Part shown: in pieces, positions 34,574 to 44,632 of the stretch | Layout of the letters: every line of letters begins with the position of its first letter | How positions within the stretch are numbered: position 1 is the first letter of the stretch | Source: Corallochytrium limacisporum Hawaii | Lineage: Eukaryota; Protista; Pluriformea | Reading direction: 5' to 3' | Assembly (NCBI GenBank): GCA_002811645.1 | Contig: PDIP01000044.1 | Coordinates: 4,286-68,285 of the forward strand | DNA: 64,000 nt | Made by a program: the position numbers and the translations under genes | The notes under the pieces: model-generated | Databases searched by the model: none | The model's input: the letters and a program-made list of their open reading frames with translations, nothing else | Told to the model about the DNA's origin: nothing

Positions 34574-35980
34574 ATGTCACGGACCGGTAGAGCGGCACGG
34601 GCGTCCGAGGACCCGACTGATCATAAGTACATTCTCTATGGTGGCCAATTCAGTCCATTCCTGCACAAACTGCGCCCTGCCCTGTCTCGCGCAGGCCTGC
34701 CTTACAAAAAGGCCCCAAATATTGATGGAAACATTACGTATGGGGAGCTGGACAGCGCTCACAAACGCGTGCAGGCGATGAAGAAGAAGAACAAGCCGGA
34801 CGTGCCGGAGAATTGGATTCCGGACATGGATGAGTTCCCGCTTGCTCCGTACCTCCTCAGAGATGACGGCATGGACCTCGTTGATTCGACGGCTATCATT
34901 CACTGGGCGGACAAAACATTCGACAGTTCTATGGTCCCGAGGGTACCCGACGCCGGCCGAAGTCGACACTACTCCGAGGCTCTGCGCTGGGTCGCGATGT
35001 GCCTTGAGGAGTTGCCTGACGAATGGGGCCAGTGCCTTGCTCTACACCAACGCTGGGTCTACTCTGGGGACACAGTCTTTGCTGGTGAAGGCATTGTCGA
35101 AGAAATTGCGGCAGGATTCGGGCTGCCGACCTATGCAATTAGTCCGCACAATCCCACCATCCAAGACAGTCGACAGCTTCCTGGCTGGCGCGGATGGTTT
35201 GCTTCGGCAGTCTCGATAGTCCTTCTTCCCGTAATGTGGCTGTTGGTCTACTTGTTCGACCGTCGACAGATCACCCGGCTGCCCTACCATAACAGTTTCG
35301 CACCAAAAGGTTTCAAGCCTCTAAAGGCAGGGCGACCTGCGCCACCGTCTTGGGAGGACGAGGGTTTCCCTCCTACACATAAAATGCTCGAGGATGGCTA
35401 CCTCGGGTTCTGTCAGGGTGTCGAGGATGCTTTAACCTCAGATGGTCGTCCATTCATCATGGGCCAGCGATTCACAATCGTGGATGCCAGCTGCTTTGGC
35501 GTGCTGTACATGAAGCACTTCAGCGACGTGCGGACGCGCAAGGACATGGTGGAACGATACCCGAAGCTGTGCCAATGGATCGATCGGGTGGAGACCCTGA
35601 CGGAGAAGCGAGATCGCTTCGATGCCGGCTGGGGACCCGATGATGGACAGTTGAACATGGACGGACTGCAGTCATTAATGAGAGAGAACACTGAATGTCA
35701 GTTCCCGCTGATCTTTACACAGGTCAAGGAGTACGAGAAGTACAGGGCTCAGGGACAGACACTTTTCAACGAAGCGGCCCTCAACAAACGCGAAGCGCTC
35801 TACTACGGCGAGATTCGCGGCCACAGGTACCGCCATGTCGTAAAGACGTTCCAGGTGAAGGTTGCTTATCGTCTTCGTGATCAATGGGAGGAGCTCAGTG
35901 ATGGAGCCCGAACCCTGATTAAGGACAAGTTTGGCGATCCCTGGCGTTGCGTCGATCCGGCTGTGCAGCCCAGGGTCTAA
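34574..35980 (+). CDS. Glutathione S-transferase-like protein of bacterial type
   Basis: LYGGQFSPFLHK, P-x-x-P, DSTAIIHW (GST N domain). DEWG..LHQRW and PFIMGQRFTIVDAS (GST C domain). Extra C-terminal FNEAA..LYYGEI..VVKTFQVKV extension. Confidence 0.8.
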   Translation: MSRTGRAARASEDPTDHKYILYGGQFSPFLHKLRPALSRAGLPYKKAPNIDGNITYGELDSAHKRVQAMKKKNKPDVPENWIPDMDEFPLAPYLLRDDGMDLVDSTAIIHWADKTFDSSMVPRVPDAGRSRHYSEALRWVAMCLEELPDEWGQCLALHQRWVYSGDTVFAGEGIVEEIAAGFGLPTYAISPHNPTIQDSRQLPGWRGWFASAVSIVLLPVMWLLVYLFDRRQITRLPYHNSFAPKGFKPLKAGRPAPPSWEDEGFPPTHKMLEDGYLGFCQGVEDALTSDGRPFIMGQRFTIVDASCFGVLYMKHFSDVRTRKDMVERYPKLCQWIDRVETLTEKRDRFDAGWGPDDGQLNMDGLQSLMRENTECQFPLIFTQVKEYEKYRAQGQTLFNEAALNKREALYYGEIRGHRYRHVVKTFQVKVAYRLRDQWEELSDGARTLIKDKFGDPWRCVDPAVQPRV

Positions 35981-36195
35981 TCGACCGCTGGAGATGAGCG
36001 TAACAACCGAAATAAACCCACCAGTGTGTTGTCATGAAAAGAGCAATGAATAGTATGTAATGGCATGTTGTAATTCTGTTTTGAAATCGTCGAGTAAAAA
36101 GAAGGAAAGGAGTTTTCGTGGGTTTTGGGCTTGAACCATACTTTTTTCTCTTTTTGTCTTGTGCTCTATCTTTGTTTTTCCGATATTACCAGTGA

Positions 36196-38073
36196 TCAGC
36201 TTATGGTCAGCTTGGAAATATCCACACAAGGTTCAGCGTTGTACTTTGTGACTGTCTTGACTGCCCGGCGAATCATTTCGTTGAATACTTGTTGCACGCG
36301 GGCCCCCGACAGCAACGTGAACCCGTAGGCATGGCTCACCAAAATGCGGTTCTGTCCCACCGAAGAGGCGCGCACCTTGCGTTCAAAGACAAACGCTTGA
36401 CCATCAGGACTCTTGGCAACGTGGATGCCCGTGTACACCTCACCGTTGGAGATGACTTTCTCCATGGCCTGATTAATAAGAATCACGGCATCACGTGGAA
36501 TGCGGTAACTGGCCACCATGGCACTGGCTGGCTTCCCAATCAGCTCTGCGGCCGGCACGCAGAAGACCGTGGTCCACATCTGATCAACGTAGCCAATGCG
36601 GGTCGAGCTGGGAATCTCACTATTCTCGTCGTACGTCAGTTCAATGACCGCAGTCGCGACAAGACCCTCGGCCTCTTCCTTTCCAATGGACTTGAGCAGC
36701 GGGTCGCGACGCTTGAAACTGTCCAAACGTTCCTCGGCACGTACTACGCTGCCCGGTCGGTGAGGCACCAAATTACTGGCTGTTTTAGATCCTGGTGGTC
36801 CCGTGCGCATACCTTTCTGTTGCATCTGCACATGCTGCAGCTTAGCCTTGGTTTCTTCCAGCTCCTTGCGCAGTTCAGTGATCAGTGCGGCCGCCGCGGT
36901 GACCATCTGTGCCTTGGAAGGTGGTCCCTTGGTGTCCAGCTCAGGGAGTACGGCCTGTAGCTCATTGAAGGCTTCCTTAAGACGATGTCGACTGCGAGCC
37001 TCGGCTGCCTTGTGAGCTTCGTTGCGATTGAATTCAATAGTGGCCTGATCCAGTTCCTCACCATCCTTGCCCCGCTTTGTGTTCTTCTTGATGACGCCAG
37101 TGCTCTTGCGACTCGATGTCTCGTCGGACGGCGAGTTCTTCAGTTTGCTCTTACTGTCAGCGGTTTCACTCTCCGGCGACTTGGACCCCGCCTTACGAAG
37201 GAAATTGGGCACGCGGCTGAACGGATGGAAGCGTTTGGACTTGCTCGCGCCCGCGTCACTATCGGCCATCATTACATCGCTGGTACTCTCGCCCATGTTA
37301 CCAGCCCCGCGTGGAGATGCACCTTGCATCTGTGCTTTCAATCCTTTCATGGGACCACCGGCACCGGAGGTGTCCATACCTCCTGCACCGTGCATGTGCC
37401 CGGGGTGCAACGCACGGCCGCGATCCACGTCAAACTCGGGCAGATCCAGGTTCTCCCAGAGCAAGGCCAGATCATCCGCTTCCCCGAGGTAGTCCTGCTG
37501 CTGTCCTTCTCCGCCGGCAGCTCCACCAGCGCCGCCGTTCATGGAACCATTACCACCACCCTGAGCGAAGGGTTTATGGAACATTTCGTTGTCCACGGGA
37601 CCGGCAGAGCCGTCTGCACTTGGCGAGGCATCGCCCAGAGTGTTCATGAGGTCCTCCAAGTGCGCACTCACATTGGCGTAGCCTGCACGGGCAGATGCGG
37701 GCGGGGCCAGCAGCGACATCAGTGCAGGATCCTGGTTACGCATCTCTGCCCCGCTGGCAAAGATGGACTTGGTCGAAGCCGGACGTTGTGGCTTAAAGTA
37801 CTCACCGTTGCCTCGGGTGACAATAATGACACTGTTCGGCATGCAGTAGTGCAAGTTGTCGATTTCCTGACCCTGTGAAGTGTACAGCTTCGGAGGCAAC
37901 ATAAAATCAGTTGCTGGTCCCATTTCTCCGTAGACCAAGCGGTACATTTCCATAGCCACTTCGTTCAAATCCCGGTTCGGATCGACACTGTAGTCGATAG
38001 CTACGCCTGTACCCAATGGCAAGGGCACATTGGGATACAGTCTCACGGGGACACCACCCGGCACACCGTTCAT
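36196..38073 (-). CDS. bHLH-leucine zipper transcription factor with N-terminal doublecortin-like domain and C-terminal PAS domain
   Basis: bHLH HKAAEARSRHRLKEAFNELQAVLP..SKAQMV..ITEL plus a short zipper. PAS-like IGYVDQMWTTVFCVPAAELIGKP..GEVYTG..SPDGQAF. DCX-like VRLYPN..KLYTSQGQEI..GEYFK. Confidence 0.85.
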   Translation of the reverse strand: MNGVPGGVPVRLYPNVPLPLGTGVAIDYSVDPNRDLNEVAMEMYRLVYGEMGPATDFMLPPKLYTSQGQEIDNLHYCMPNSVIIVTRGNGEYFKPQRPASTKSIFASGAEMRNQDPALMSLLAPPASARAGYANVSAHLEDLMNTLGDASPSADGSAGPVDNEMFHKPFAQGGGNGSMNGGAGGAAGGEGQQQDYLGEADDLALLWENLDLPEFDVDRGRALHPGHMHGAGGMDTSGAGGPMKGLKAQMQGASPRGAGNMGESTSDVMMADSDAGASKSKRFHPFSRVPNFLRKAGSKSPESETADSKSKLKNSPSDETSSRKSTGVIKKNTKRGKDGEELDQATIEFNRNEAHKAAEARSRHRLKEAFNELQAVLPELDTKGPPSKAQMVTAAAALITELRKELEETKAKLQHVQMQQKGMRTGPPGSKTASNLVPHRPGSVVRAEERLDSFKRRDPLLKSIGKEEAEGLVATAVIELTYDENSEIPSSTRIGYVDQMWTTVFCVPAAELIGKPASAMVASYRIPRDAVILINQAMEKVISNGEVYTGIHVAKSPDGQAFVFERKVRASSVGQNRILVSHAYGFTLLSGARVQQVFNEMIRRAVKTVTKYNAEPCVDISKLTIS

Positions 38074-38257
38074 GTTGCTGTTATGTCCCAGAATATTGAC
38101 TGTGTGTACAATCTACCGTCTGCAAATGAAAATCGCAATTATTTCTGTTTTGGCTTCTCACAGAAATATGCTCGTTTAGATCTTTTTATTGTAGCTCACA
38201 GAAGTTGTCCCTGGCTTCCCTAATTTGTCGAATAGAGGAGTGGGTCCGCAGTTTTGT

Positions 38258-38263
38258 CACGTG
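38258..38263. promoter_or_regulatory. Candidate E-box CACGTG upstream of the bHLH gene
   Basis: TCACGTG lies about 185 bp upstream of the ATG at 38073. A single hexamer can occur by chance. Confidence 0.25.
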
Positions 38264-39814
38264 TATTCTTTGGAGTCGTCCCTCATACGTGTTCCGGTGT
38301 TCGTACCAATTATAGATCACATAAGTGTTGTAATTTCATACCTTTTCTGGAGCGTACTTGAAGGTGACATGTGTTCGCAAATTGTCATTAGTCCTGTTGC
38401 TTCCATTGCATGCTGTCTGTGCTGAAGAAAACCCTTACAAGACAAAATGAACAGTACAGGCTACGGAAAGATGCATGTGCACACAATTGGCACCAAATGT
38501 TTGACATCTACGCACCCACACCGCCCAGAAAAATGATCCCAGATCGCCTAATGGTCGGGACGTCATTACAGCATCACCCCAAACAATTTTTTCCATTGTT
38601 TTTGTAAGGAAAACCGGCGCATCCCCTATCGCTCCGGCGATTCATTCCTCCCGGGGTGAGGAGGAGGGAGGGAACGAGGGAGGGTGGGGTGCGTGAGTGT
38701 GAGTGTGTGTCCTTTCCGCTCTTCCCTTCCCCGGGTACACCCTCCCTCCCCCCTCCCTCTCTCCTTCTCTCTCTCTCTCTCTCTGTGGGGATGGCCTTGC
38801 AGCCTTGCGGTCCCCGCTCTTTTTCCTCTGTGTCTGTGTGTGTGTATGGATCAGTCCCTTTTGAAACAAAGAGAAAAAAATTCGGGCAAGACCACAGGAA
38901 CCAAAATATCAGGCTGGGGGCAAGCGCGGGCAAAATGGAGGGAAGAGAGGAAAGGGGGGGGGGTCCAGGCTTCGACGAAACGGGAAGGACAGGTGAGGTC
39001 CAGAGTATTGAATTTTGTTTAAATTTTCTTCACACTTTCCCCCCTCCCCCCACCTCCTCTCCCTAGGCCCTGCGCTTCCTTCCTTGCTTCCTTCTTTTTA
39101 TCCCTTCCTTCCACTGAAAAAAAATGGGAAACCGTGCTCTGTCTCCAAACCGTCACAAGACCCCTCCTGCATTTTCTATACGCCTGTGCCCAACGGCGCA
39201 ACCCTGCCGTAATTCGCACCTCTCCCTTCCCGGCGGCGGGAGACGGACCGCCGCCCGGGGGGGGGGTGGTCCCTTCTCCTCCTTCCCCGCGGCTCTCGGA
39301 GAGCAAGCGGGAGACTCCCTTTTCCTTCCACGCAAAAGAACAAAAGGCCTCGAACTCTCTCTCTCTCTCTCTTGTGGCTCATGTGAATTTTTCGATTGAT
39401 TTCTTGCCTTTCCGTCGTTTTCGTCCCCCTTACCCTTGCTCACGGTCCCCTCCCTGAGAATGGCTTTTTCAGGACCGGTGTGTGGTATTTTTGTCCTTTC
39501 TGTCTGTGTTGTCTACCGCCTGCCTTGGTATTTTACTTTTTGATTCCCTCAATTTGCAGGAATCCCGAGTGTTTCACCACGGCGGAAGGAGGGGGGGAGG
39601 GGCCACCTCCCCGCTCAAAAGGCACCTTACTTTTATCGTCCTGCCATCGTGGTTTCTTTCTTTTTTTTTGCTTTGAAGCATGCCTTGCAGGGGGACTACT
39701 GTCTGTTCATACCGTGTACTGGCTGTCTTGTCATTTTGGTCTCTTTCTTCTGTTGACTGTGCGTTGTAATCATTGGCATCCATCAATCGAATCGATGGAA
39801 GGCCCGCAGATGAC

Positions 39815-39834
39815 GGTGTGTGTGTGTGTGTGTG
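39815..39834. repeat. (GT)n microsatellite
   Basis: Direct observation. Confidence 0.85.
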
Positions 39835-40133
39835 TCTGGGAAGAAACGGCCGGTTGTGAAAACACTGCTGCTGCCTTTGATTTTCTCCTCCCCCGAGCGG
39901 GAGCGTTGTGGTGGTAGTGTGTAGCAGACGTTCCACTGTGGCCCTGTGTTTGGGGTGTTTGTGGGTGCCGATGGGGTGAATGTGAGACATGGCCATGAAT
40001 ACACTAACATCACGTCCACGATCTCCGGTTTTGCGTAATACCGGTGTCATGCTGCCGGACGTTGCGCGCTTACTGGAGTGGTTTGGTTTGGTGTCTTGTG
40101 AGCGCGGGATGTCTCTGTGTCTCTGTGTGTGTG

Positions 40134-40210
40134 AGTAGTAGTAGTAGAAGTAGAAGTAGAAGTACTAGTAGTAGTCGTAGTACTAGTAGTAGTAGTAGTA
40201 GTAGAAGTAG
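40134..40210. repeat. Imperfect (AGT)n microsatellite
   Basis: AGT repeats interrupted by AGA/ACT/CGT. Confidence 0.9.
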
Positions 40211-40423
40211 GCTTTCCCGGCCCTTCTCACCTCCTCTCTCTCCCCTTGCAATGTTGGGCCTTACCTTATGCCACGGTTTAAGGCAGAATTTGGGTCTGCA
40301 TCCGATAAGCATCGACGGCGGTCTGGGCTTGTGTTTTGCTTGGGTTTTTCTTTACTTTTTGTTACTTTTTGTTAGAGTTTTTCCTTCGAAACCCTTTGTG
40401 GTTGCAATTCAGGGGCCGGGGTC

Positions 40424-40451
40424 GTGGTGGTGGTGGTGGTGGTGGTGGTGG
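40424..40451. repeat. (TGG)n microsatellite
   Basis: About 9 tandem TGG units. Confidence 0.9.
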
Positions 40452-41999
40452 AACAAAGAGGACTGGGAGTATGATATGAATACACTTAAGATAGGAACTC
40501 ACAACTTCAGGCGCACGCGAGGTTTGTTTTTTTTTTTTTTTGGTGGACCAAGGCCGAAAAATAGCCACCACCACCACCCCTCCTCTCCTTTGGGGAGGAG
40601 AGAAAGAAGAAAGGGGCTGGGGTAGGACAAGACATAGAGGCATATGGCTCCAAAGCACCCAAAGTGCAAAGTTTGGGAACGGTTGCGTCCACAAACGAAT
40701 GATTTGGGCAGGGAGAGGAGGTTGGGGGGGAGGGGAAAGAAGGGAGGAAGGAACTAGTTCGGGGGTCCTGAGCATGCTATGCGGTGCAGGGTGCTGCTAT
40801 GGTGAATGTATGAGATCTCTAGCGCAAGCTCCAAGCCCGCGCCAATTTTTTCTTGGTGTTTTCCTCTTCTTCTTCTCCTCACCGGGTTCCTATACACCAA
40901 TAAAATACAGTGAGGAATCGTGCTCCAGCCTCTTCTTTCCCGATTGATTAGGTCAACCTAAAAAAGATTTCACGCCGCTGTTACCCACCTTTCCCGCCCG
41001 GCAGTACGGCCGGTATGGCAGTATATGGTATGCCTTGGGCCAGTTTGGTTGGGGTTGGTTCTACTGAACGGATCGGTCCGAGATCGAAAGCGAAAAAGAG
41101 AGGGAGGGGGGGGGGGGGGGAGAGGTGAGTGAGTGGGGAAGAGTGGGCGGGAGAGTTGGGGAGGATGTGTGAAGCGCGCCAGCGGGGCGGGGTGGGGCGC
41201 AAAGGCCGCCTTACGCAGCAGAAAAATGGCTTCCAAATTAAAATCAGACTCCCGTTTGCCCCTGCAGTGAAGAAGGGGAGGGGGGTGACTTGGCCGATTA
41301 CCAACTTTTTTGGCCATTGTACTGCATACCCACTCTCTCTGTTCTTGCCTACCAGCGCCGGATCAAAGTCCCCCAAGGCACAAAAAGTTTTCTTTGTTGG
41401 TGGTAGTGGTACAGTGTACTTGATCAAACGGCAGGACAAAAAGGCAAGTGCGAGACATGTGAGATATATATATATATGGAGATTGAAAGAGGGTTTGGTC
41501 CCTTCCCAATCATGAATACGGCGGGACACTTTCCTTTACTATTTTGTTTTTGTTTTGACGGGACGGGAATGTTTAGCCTCTCATTTAGTGGTATATTATG
41601 TATCGCGGATATCCACACCATCGATCCTGTCGGGAGTCTATTTTGCCGACAGGGAGACCCCAACATACCCTCCCACCAGGAAAGCAAAAACACGGGAGAA
41701 CTGTGGGCCCATGCAAATGAAGAGGAAAAAATGGGCCTGTTCGGAGCTCGGTTAGGTGGAAATCCGCGAGATGGAATACGAACCAGAGCGAGTAAGAAAT
41801 ACAAGGAAAAAAATAGGGAAAAAAAAAGGAAAATACATAATGCAGGAATTCCTGTCACGTCCCCCGGACCCCGACTTGGGAAAAAGAGAAAAAAATGGAT
41901 GGAAAGGGAACGACAAAGTTTTGGCATAGCCGGTCTGTTGAGGAAAAAGGGCAGGGCGGGAGAAGGAAAGGGGGCCAAGGGAAGGGGAGCGGGGAGAGT

Positions 42000-42039
<40 letters not shown>

Positions 42040-42112
42040 AGAGGGACAAGAGAGAGGGGGTGGGGAAGGCCGGGGAGGGGGAGGTAGTTGATCGGGCGCA
42101 ATGGAGACAAAA
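42000..42112 (+). repeat. (GA)n plus 70-bp unique tail; copy 1 of a direct repeat
   Basis: Matches 43339-43451 apart from one substitution, including the same GG interruption in the GA tract. Confidence 0.9.
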
Positions 42113-43293
42113 GTAGAATAATCAACCTTTCCTTTTCTCACACCACACCCGGTTTTCGTACCATTGCGCAGCATAAGGGACTCCCAATTCCATACCTGCA
42201 CTATACGATCTCTCCCACACACGTCCACAGCCACAGGCCTCTGTGTACCTTCCGTACCTTTTCATTTGCAGCAATTCTTCATTACCACCAATGTCCATGT
42301 TGCACGACTCCGTCTGCTGTTTCTCATTGTCTCGGTATACGTACAGTGATGTTATTTTTGCACAGTTGGGGGTATTCCGGTTCCCTGAGAAGTGACAAAG
42401 CATGTGAATAGGAAACCTGGACCCCGCCAGCCCCCCCCCCCTCCCCGGGGGAGAGGGGAGCTCGGATGGCAAAAGCAGCAGAAGAAGGCATGTCCAGCCC
42501 GGCTCAGTTTGTCGAACATTTAGTACTGGAACTTAGCTGGGAGAATGTGGAAAGGTTATGAAGAGGACTGCCAACCCCCCCCCCCGGGCGGGACGCTCTC
42601 CTCTCTCTCTCTCTCGCGGCTGCTGGTGGACACTTTGACTGCCGTTTACGTAGTAGCGTGAGTGTGAGACCGACGGAGGGCCTCCGCGGGGGGGGGGTGT
42701 GTTGTACCGGAAAGCGATAAATGGTGTGAAAATTCTTCTTTTCTATTCGTTTGCTTTTCTAGCCCCTGGGCGGCATGTCTGCTGAGTTTTGTTACCCCGA
42801 TTGGATCGCATCGGTGGAGAAAAAACACGGGAACTCGATAGCGTGTGTTGTATTTCATACTGAATGTGCCAGATGTTTTGTAGAGATAGCAATTTTGCCT
42901 CGGAGTGCCCGCAAACACTCAGTACGAAAGGACGTTCACACCGGGCACACGGGCGTGAATTTCTTGTGTCTCATTCTGGCTATGGAATTCGCACCATCGC
43001 GCGAGACGGGACGGCTCGCTTGGCCACGAATGACGAAAAGGGTAAGGAACGGTGTTGAAACGGAGAGGGAAGTTATGTGTTTTTTCTTTCTTTCTTGCTT
43101 GGGGAATTCATGGATGTCAGTGTTTGTATAATTAATGTATGGAGCATAAAGTGGGAAGAATCGTGATAACTCCGAATACCGGTGGTTCTGGTGCATGGCT
43201 GTGGTTAGGCTTCCGAAAGGCCCTTGTTTTCTCAAGTTTTCCTTTTTTCTCTCTTTGTTTGCACGGCGCGCTCGGGAGAAAGGACCAAAGAAA

Positions 43294-43296
<3 letters not shown>

Positions 43297-43378
<82 letters not shown>

Positions 43379-43453
43379 AGAGGGACAAGAGAGAGGGGGT
43401 GGGGAAGGCCGGGGAGGGGGAGGGAGTTGATCGGGCGCAATGGAGACAAAAAA

Positions 43454-43510
<57 letters not shown>

Positions 43511-43521
43511 GAGCGAGAGAG
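43297..43521 (+). repeat. Long (GA)n tracts enclosing copy 2 of the direct repeat (43339-43451)
   Basis: Direct observation. Confidence 0.9.
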
Positions 43522-44632
43522 AAGGGGGAGCGAACTGAGAGCCAAAGAGAGAAAAAAAAAGTATAAGTGAGGAGGGCCAGCGACGGCTGTTGTGACGGCC
43601 TGACCGAGGCGAGCGCTGAGTGGCTGGATCTTCTATTGCGGTCCCCGGGTACCGTCGCTCTGCCACCCCGGGGGTCTCCTTTTTTCCTTTCGATGTTGGC
43701 CCCCCCCCTCTCTTCACTCCCTCTGTCCCTCTCCTTTTTTCCTTGTCTCTTTTTTTTTCATTTTTTTTTTTGGTGTTCGTCACTCACCGGCCCGTGTTTT
43801 TATGCGGGTCCTGGTAGTCCGCGGCTGGAGAAGGGGCCGGGACGGGTGCCCTTGGGAGAGACCGGGGTGGGGGGGGGATGGAAAGTGTAACCTTGGGGCG
43901 TTGGGTGACATTGTGCGATATAATCTTAGGGGTTTCGCGGGAATGAATGCAACGCGTACCTATCGGGATTGGAAGGACGAGCCAGGCGCGCTCATGAGAG
44001 GATCGCCAGCCATGCTCGCTCAGCGAGAATTGTAGGGAGACAAGAGACAGGGACAGAGAAAGGACTCACGAGGAGATCGAGTCCCACACGCGCGATGCTG
44101 CCTAGTATACCATCGTTCGTGGGTTAGTAGTGCTCGGATCCGCGGCTCACGCATCAACCACCTTCAGTACTTGGATGGCAGGATGCTTGCTTGATGACAT
44201 GGGCTCTGAATCCGCGCCGGATGCTCCGATTGATGGCGGGCGCACGGTTGAAGATATTTTTACCTTTACATGCTGAATTGGCAGGGACAATGTTACGGCC
44301 CGGGACACTGGCTTTCGCATCGTGATGATCAGCGGGGCAACCCGAGCCTAAGCAGCAGTAAGGCAGTGAAGAAATGACTTGTGCGTGCGTCTTGGGTGAA
44401 AGTCCTCTCCTGTGAACAACGTATGCCACTTGGAAGATTTAAAAGGACCAGACGGCTTGAGTCTATTCTGTGCAGGAGCAGTAGTGTCCCTTAATGGTGA
44501 AGACAGCGATTTACATCTACGAGTCACTAAGCCGGATGTATCTAAGCACTTGCCCGAAACTACAAAAACCCATACAGTTGTTCTTTAATAACGAATTCAT
44601 CTATCTTCGCAAACTCGCCACATTAGCCCTTC

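Follow-up and report, generated by a model that had tools for sequence, protein, structure and literature searches.

Animal group C transcription factors (ARNT/BMAL, AHR, HIF, SIM, CLOCK) carry a bHLH and two tandem PAS domains in one polypeptide and couple sensing to transcription. Passages of one published study (PMC5800844) describe the bHLH-PAS fusion as having arisen once in holozoans and present early animals as lacking HIF, which leaves transcription-level oxygen or redox sensing in their single-celled ancestors an open question. Factors in which one bHLH is followed by a single PAS domain also occur in diatoms, where RITMO1/bHLH1a and bHLH1b have this arrangement, in other algae and in basal opisthokonts (bioRxiv 10.1101/271445). 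The Myc, Max, Mlx and USF factors combine a zipper with a basic region that carries H5, E9 and R13. Replacement of Arg12 is a hallmark of SREBP, in which Tyr12 removes the E9-R12 salt bridge and permits a second, asymmetric site, giving dual specificity (PMC8431614, PMC6329520). Three cysteines suffice for an Fe-S cluster in the PAS domains of NreB and OrpR (PMC13478379, PMC8359166).

We analyzed a 64,000-nucleotide stretch of the Corallochytrium limacisporum genome (contig PDIP01000044.1; hereafter, the window) that encodes a protein with a DCX-like N-terminal domain, a bHLH with a short zipper and one PAS domain (Table 1). The ORF is intact, and its neighbors are ordinary eukaryotic genes. 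A first-pass annotation, made from the sequence alone, had placed all three domains on a single transcript. We checked the RNA for separate genes: two runs, both probably RNA, each have one unbroken contig that contains the entire unspliced ORF without a joint. The extents of these contigs fix neither the true transcript ends nor the strand, and no contig in the two runs covers sequence above 38300. An intron candidate in the 5' UTR (38120-38341) was rejected, since RNA contigs cross 38120 unbroken and without a joint. Seven of the eight coding differences between two strains are synonymous. The ORF is thus one expressed gene under purifying selection. A GST-like gene of 468 aa (34574-35980, plus strand) is convergent with the factor gene; the transcripts of the two end near each other but are separate, and their contig depths differ.

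To avoid circularity, we built leave-out domain profiles without any Corallochytrium row. These profiles scored 18 bits for the N-terminal domain, 56 bits for the bHLH and 28 bits for the PAS domain of the window protein, and none of 1000 shuffles scored above 4.5 bits. Each domain has profile or fold support, and the three-domain architecture is real.

Table 1. Features of the factor gene and its upstream stretch (positions within the window).
Feature	Position	Strand	Basis
Single-exon CDS, 625 aa	36196..38073	-	ORF list, RNA contigs, strain comparison
Extent of RNA contigs	36061..38281	-	Contigs 36061-38179 and 36129-38281
DCX-like beta-grasp domain, aa 8-95	37789..38052	-	AlphaFold model, structure matches, leave-out profile
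Conserved linker motif, aa 205-214	37432..37461	-	Family rows compared with shuffles
bHLH domain, aa 351-402	36868..37023	-	Pfam HLH above cut-off; family profile
Basic-region signature H354, E358, S361, R362 (positions 5, 9, 12, 13)	36988..37014	-	Family alignment
Short leucine zipper, aa 398-416	36826..36882	-	Heptad count; inferred from pattern
Pro/Gly-containing spacer, zipper to PAS	36679..36825	-	Spacing comparison; not in typical family members
Single PAS domain, aa 472-588	36310..36660	-	AlphaFold model; LOV/Aer/NifL matches
Helix after PAS core, aa 591-610	36244..36303	-	Secondary structure of model
Upstream stretch without long ORF, 6.56 kb, rich in GA repeats	38074..44632	.	ORF map, repeats

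The N-terminal domain adopts a predicted beta-grasp fold that most resembles DCX domains. Pfam matched it weakly by itself (Ubiquitin_DCDC1, E 0.08), and Pfam DCX (PF03607) gave no match for the window protein. The AlphaFold model (pLDDT 82) is a beta-grasp whose three best matches among solved structures are DCX domains (VIA Z 9.5, 9.3 and 9.1). The best of these, human N-DC, aligns with an rmsd of 3.1 over 82 residues, indicating a DCX-type beta-grasp fold, and DCX domains also fill the top rows of a Foldseek search (E 5e-3). KCTD9-KHA and DCLK were the best Atlas structure matches, and the Atlas feature search gave weak leads (0.78, KHA). A DCX-like domain had been read by eye at about 37790-38050, and the model and structure searches agree with that reading. 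Across the family, Ubiquitin_DCDC1 is a weak match in nine of 17 members, and Pfam KHA (PF11834) matches none of the 17, so the KHA likeness is structural alone. Compared with DCX, KHA and DCDC1 domains, the family domain occurs singly as part of a transcription factor, has a neutral to acidic charge and scores below curated cut-offs. A profile match of the N-terminal domain to TRPM5 (E 2e-4) was rejected because the fold model is a beta-grasp with DCX matches. When the genome was searched with Pfam DCX, one of the family members gave the sole match; this count, from an exon-wise search, is a lower bound.

An acidic-hydrophobic patch had been noticed between the DCX-like domain and the bHLH. 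The patch is present, and what the earlier reading missed is that it forms a conserved family motif with the pattern hydrophobic-F/W-x-x-hydrophobic-x-hydrophobic-P-x-hydrophobic. Of 29 family rows, 16 contain the motif, compared with an expectation of 0.08 from shuffles. Among rows that have the DCX-like domain, 15 of 19 contain it; among intact rows that lack the domain, none of seven does (Fisher p 5e-4, with rows not independent), and the DCX-less rows are scattered over several parts of the family tree. We considered a HIF-type LxxLAP degron and rejected it, as the spacing is unlike that of the motif in PMC5800844.

The bHLH passes the Pfam HLH cut-off (28.7 bits vs 20.7), and its basic region has the H-E-R residues and the Ser that had been described. 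E9 and R13 are invariant across 27 family rows. At position 12, 25 of these rows have Ser, the other two have Ala or Cys, and none has Arg. About 2.5 heptads of zipper (I398/L401/L405/T408/L412/V415) come after helix 2. The family bHLH profile is closest to Max (E 1e-15), followed by Myc and USF, with BMAL1 (1e-5) and ARNT far lower, in keeping with the group-B-like assignment made at first pass. By H5, E9, R13 and the zipper, the window bHLH would be classed as a group-B-like bHLH-ZIP that has Ser361 where the class calls for Arg12. This substitution likely changes DNA reading, as had been suggested: it falls at the same position as SREBP Tyr12, and by that analogy Ser12 probably alters site choice. 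The family differs from SREBP in having Ser rather than Tyr and no membrane anchor, and the two are unrelated by tree. It differs from Myc, Max, Mlx and USF, its best profile matches, in Ser12 and in the additional DCX-like and PAS domains, and its branch is separate from the genome's Max-, Myc- and Mlx-like genes (labels given by sequence resemblance). In trees whose only outgroups come from the same genome, the family is not orthologous to Myc, Max, Mlx, USF or SREBP.

The spacing between bHLH and PAS sets the window protein apart from typical members. In 10 non-Corallochytrium proteins from six genera, exactly 94 residues separate E9 from the second PAS strand; in typical members, zipper and PAS are joined at a fixed length. 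The corresponding distance in the window protein is 137, a gain of a spacer of about 40 residues.

Pfam PAS did not match the window protein. The AlphaFold model of the C-terminal domain (pLDDT 90) is a PAS fold nearest to LOV, Aer and NifL domains (best matches, Foldseek E 7.5e-6 and VIA Z 10.9), in line with the PAS-like domain proposed at about 36310-36650. The family PAS profile matches MmoS (E 2e-20) and NifL (4e-13). The LOV motif NCRFLQ, already reported as missing from this PAS, is absent from all family rows. Profile alignments to MmoS and NifL show replacement of the Trp, His and Asn flavin residues of NifL/MmoS/Aer-type FAD-binding PAS domains (PMC10468136). By sequence, the window protein is neither a LOV protein nor a bona fide Pfam DCX member.

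Many family members carry a distinctive set of cysteines in the PAS domain. A CxxC follows the E helix in 13 of 25 PAS rows, with at least one such row in each of eight species, and 10 of these 13 rows have a third Cys on strand H (Ser in the other three). We take this strand-H position to be pocket-facing in LOV domains. In the profile alignment, the CxxC lies on the MmoS stretch that holds its Asn and His, and the family has other residues in place of the clade's Trp and Asn. The CxxC is absent from all 285 non-family PAS domains, and we rejected inheritance of the pair from bacterial PAS on this ground. The CxxC and third pocket cysteine of typical members form a candidate metal or redox sensor. 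Such members resemble NreB and OrpR in having pocket-region PAS cysteines, at a different spacing: CX2CX11C in NreB, and in the family a CxxC and a third Cys about 35 residues further along. Extra cysteines recur in L027, L035 and most CxxC members: 8 of 25 rows have one in a single column of the post-PAS helix, and 7 of 25 have one on the final PAS strand. Such a cysteine could be a fourth ligand.

The window protein has S522, I525 and F563 at the family cysteine positions, so the likeness to NreB and OrpR does not extend to it. With the cysteines lost and the 40-residue spacer gained, redox sensing is unlikely for this protein. The first-pass proposal of ligand or redox sensing thus fits, in its redox part, the cysteine-bearing relatives and not the protein for which it was made. 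Cysteine-less paralogs also occur in Syssomonas (P0038, P0154, P0042, P0052) and Chromosphaera (P0018). Their losses are apparently distinct from those in Corallochytrium, and the PAS would then have been re-tuned more than once following duplications.

We examined how widely the architecture is distributed. A direct homolog search with the window protein returned the protein itself alone; relatives emerged when a paralog profile was used to search 1.8 billion proteins, with two follow-ups. The Corallochytrium genome has 27 bHLH matches, nine of them in this family (seven three-domain proteins and two without the N-terminal domain). Relatives were found in Chromosphaera, Ichthyophonus, Amoebidium, Sphaeroforma, Creolimax, Syssomonas, Capsaspora (CAOG_08129, single-copy) and Pigoraptor, for a total of nine species with Corallochytrium, spanning Ichthyosporea, Pluriformea and Filasterea. 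Five contigs without a species name also gave matches. The spliced environmental copies L052, L053 and L055 were compared exon by exon, and joined models were left out. None of the matches listed is a named protein from an animal, a choanoflagellate or a fungus, which does not in itself prove loss.

In bHLH trees with same-genome bHLHs as the only outgroups, the family forms one side of a branch that separates it from the genome's other bHLHs (96/86; 98/89). The window protein falls in a Corallochytrium-only, cysteine-less group (97/86) whose support may be inflated because of long branches. Its identity to any relative is only 18-25%; the DCX-like domain, linker motif and basic signature are all retained. 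These comparisons suggest that the window gene is a derived paralog in an old family spread across unicellular Holozoa.

The proteins of this family are annotated in databases as hypothetical or 'BHLH domain-containing'. A literature search for CAOG_08129 and for the three-domain architecture found no description, and bHLH surveys may list CAOG_08129 as an orphan or single-PAS factor. The three-domain family is apparently unnamed; the combination of bHLH and single PAS is already known from RITMO1. The first-pass statement that no protein with this combination had been described stands to that extent, having overlooked a family of nine paralogs and nine species.

We compared the family to other factors that contain bHLH and PAS domains. 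For its bHLH-PAS part, the Atlas look-alike that ranked first was a diatom HLH+PAS cluster (0.94, 202 features). RITMO1-type factors, compared here by architecture, have no reported DCX-like domain, and none is among the listed family-profile matches. Relative to animal group C, the family has one PAS domain of a bacterial flavin clade, a zipper and a Max-like bHLH. The same genome provides a control, a separate ARNT/BMAL-like bHLH protein with two PAS-like regions (L014:1228-3150). The PAS domains of this protein score 0.4 and 1.3 bits on the family profile (hhalign probability 8%), and prokaryote-type PAS domains score up to 64 bits. The best bHLH tree separates the family from the ARNT-like gene, with grouping of the two not rejected by the AU test (p 0.37). 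Since the bHLH alone cannot reject an ARNT-like link, it is the PAS that carries the claim of a second fusion. The suggestion that the protein was independently assembled accordingly holds with respect to animal bHLH-PAS factors, by PAS type; a bHLH with one PAS was already known in protists.

We propose a model for the window protein, for and against which we find the case evenly balanced, in which it acts as a one-component, dimeric factor with relaxed E-box reading, a re-tuned PAS and a switch formed by the DCX-like domain and linker. The protein would dimerize through its HLH-zipper, with itself or with its eight paralogs, and the dimer would bind E-box-like DNA through H5, E9 and R13. Ser12 would remove the E9-R12 salt bridge as SREBP Tyr12 does, and the sites bound could then probably be relaxed or asymmetric. 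Typical members would couple a PAS-pocket cysteine site (metal, Fe-S or thiol switch) to the dimer by way of the fixed-length zipper. The window copy would have lost both sensor site and coupling, and its PAS would most likely bind a hydrophobic ligand or act in partner choice. The DCX-like domain and linker motif would form a protein-interaction switch that sets activity through self-docking or cofactor binding, rather than a microtubule anchor.

Anchoring has nonetheless to be weighed, since dimerization would give two DCX-like domains. Acting like a tandem DCX repeat, the pair could attach to the microtubule lattice and keep the factor cytoplasmic, with release upon a PAS signal or the loss of microtubules. 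True DCX domains are the best structural matches, and one paralog lies near the Pfam DCX cut-off of 22 bits, at 20.0 bits and, in the genome search, above it at 23.6 bits. DCX-microtubule contacts are chiefly electrostatic (PMC7726794), and the N-terminal domains of this family are neutral to acidic: net charge is -3 in the window protein and 0 to -9 in 16 of 17 members, a whole-domain value with which a local basic patch is compatible. Sequence identity to DCX is 13-19%, and seven family members do without the domain. KCTD9-KHA and CIDE domains, which are not known to bind microtubules, are nearly as close to the model (TM 0.67 vs 0.70; Z 7.6). We regard tethering, which the first-pass reading had also raised, as doubtful. 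A role for the cysteines of typical members in holding structural zinc, with no sensing and with the family acting as a constitutive E-box factor, is a serious alternative, though not the one we favor. CxxC pairs often bind zinc, and the third Cys is replaced by Ser in three of the 13 CxxC rows. Such a role fits poorly with the location of the cysteines at the cofactor-binding place of the PAS clade, with a modeled fold that appears intact despite repeated cysteine loss, with a fixed zipper length that suggests signal transfer and with the existence of three-cysteine Fe-S PAS sensors.

Two further alternatives concern the window protein itself. It could act as a non-sensing or inhibitory partner whose DNA binding is weak or absent and which sequesters its cysteine-bearing paralogs, the PAS serving as a dimer surface alone. 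The lost R12, short zipper, missing cysteines and low identity to relatives would all suit such a role, which we nevertheless judge improbable: H5, E9 and R13 are retained, Ser12 is family-wide and not a sign of decay, and the gene is under purifying selection. Direct sensing of redox state, oxygen or light by means of a PAS-bound flavin, haem or metal is the most improbable of these readings. The domain belongs to the NifL/MmoS/Aer/LOV clade by both sequence and fold, but the LOV cysteine motif is missing, the flavin residues are not kept and the family cysteines are now S, I and F.

The family as a whole is a concrete candidate for transcription-level sensing in the single-celled ancestors of animals and points to a second bHLH-PAS fusion. 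Tentatively, it may represent a pre-animal, HIF-independent Fe-S or metal PAS factor that arose by this second fusion, carried a DCX module, was lost before choanoflagellates and animals, and gave rise to cysteine-less receptors in Corallochytrium. If true, unicellular holozoans inherited a second bHLH-PAS family with a cysteine-ligated oxygen or redox center, and the window gene would be among the cysteine-less receptors for other ligands that expanded in Corallochytrium. The family also provides a natural test of position 12 in DNA reading by bHLH proteins and offers a doublecortin-like domain in a putative role off the cytoskeleton. It is directly testable because CAOG_08129 is single-copy in Capsaspora and the domains are small and soluble. 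The window gene, a derived copy, matters mainly as the way into the family and as an example of how a sensor can be re-tuned once its gene has been duplicated.

The ORF-poor stretch upstream of the factor gene is probably a regulatory region. We found no Rfam RNA within it. Autoregulation through upstream E-boxes was rejected, as its 6.56 kb contain one CACGTG, no excess over the window. A direct repeat of 119 nt (41994-42112 and 43333-43451, 98% identical, 1339 nt apart) is partly GA microsatellite. Upstream stretches of 4.1 to over 9.9 kb are similarly ORF-poor at the other family genes checked (L059-L063). Gaps in the window are mostly 0.1-4.5 kb, and small or spliced genes in long stretches could escape the ORF map. 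The long upstream stretches of family genes suggest large regulatory regions. Two paralogs, L003 and L005, lie head to head (G000:C238:43829-59884; adjacent gene models 9s206 and 10s206) with a gap of about 12.1 kb that has no ORF of 200 aa or more. Among other bHLH proteins, L023:1009-2853 and L032:181-1914 have a C-terminal region that is CRAL-TRIO/Sec14-like by eye, and L025:1-1878 has two receiver-like domains followed by a bHLH.
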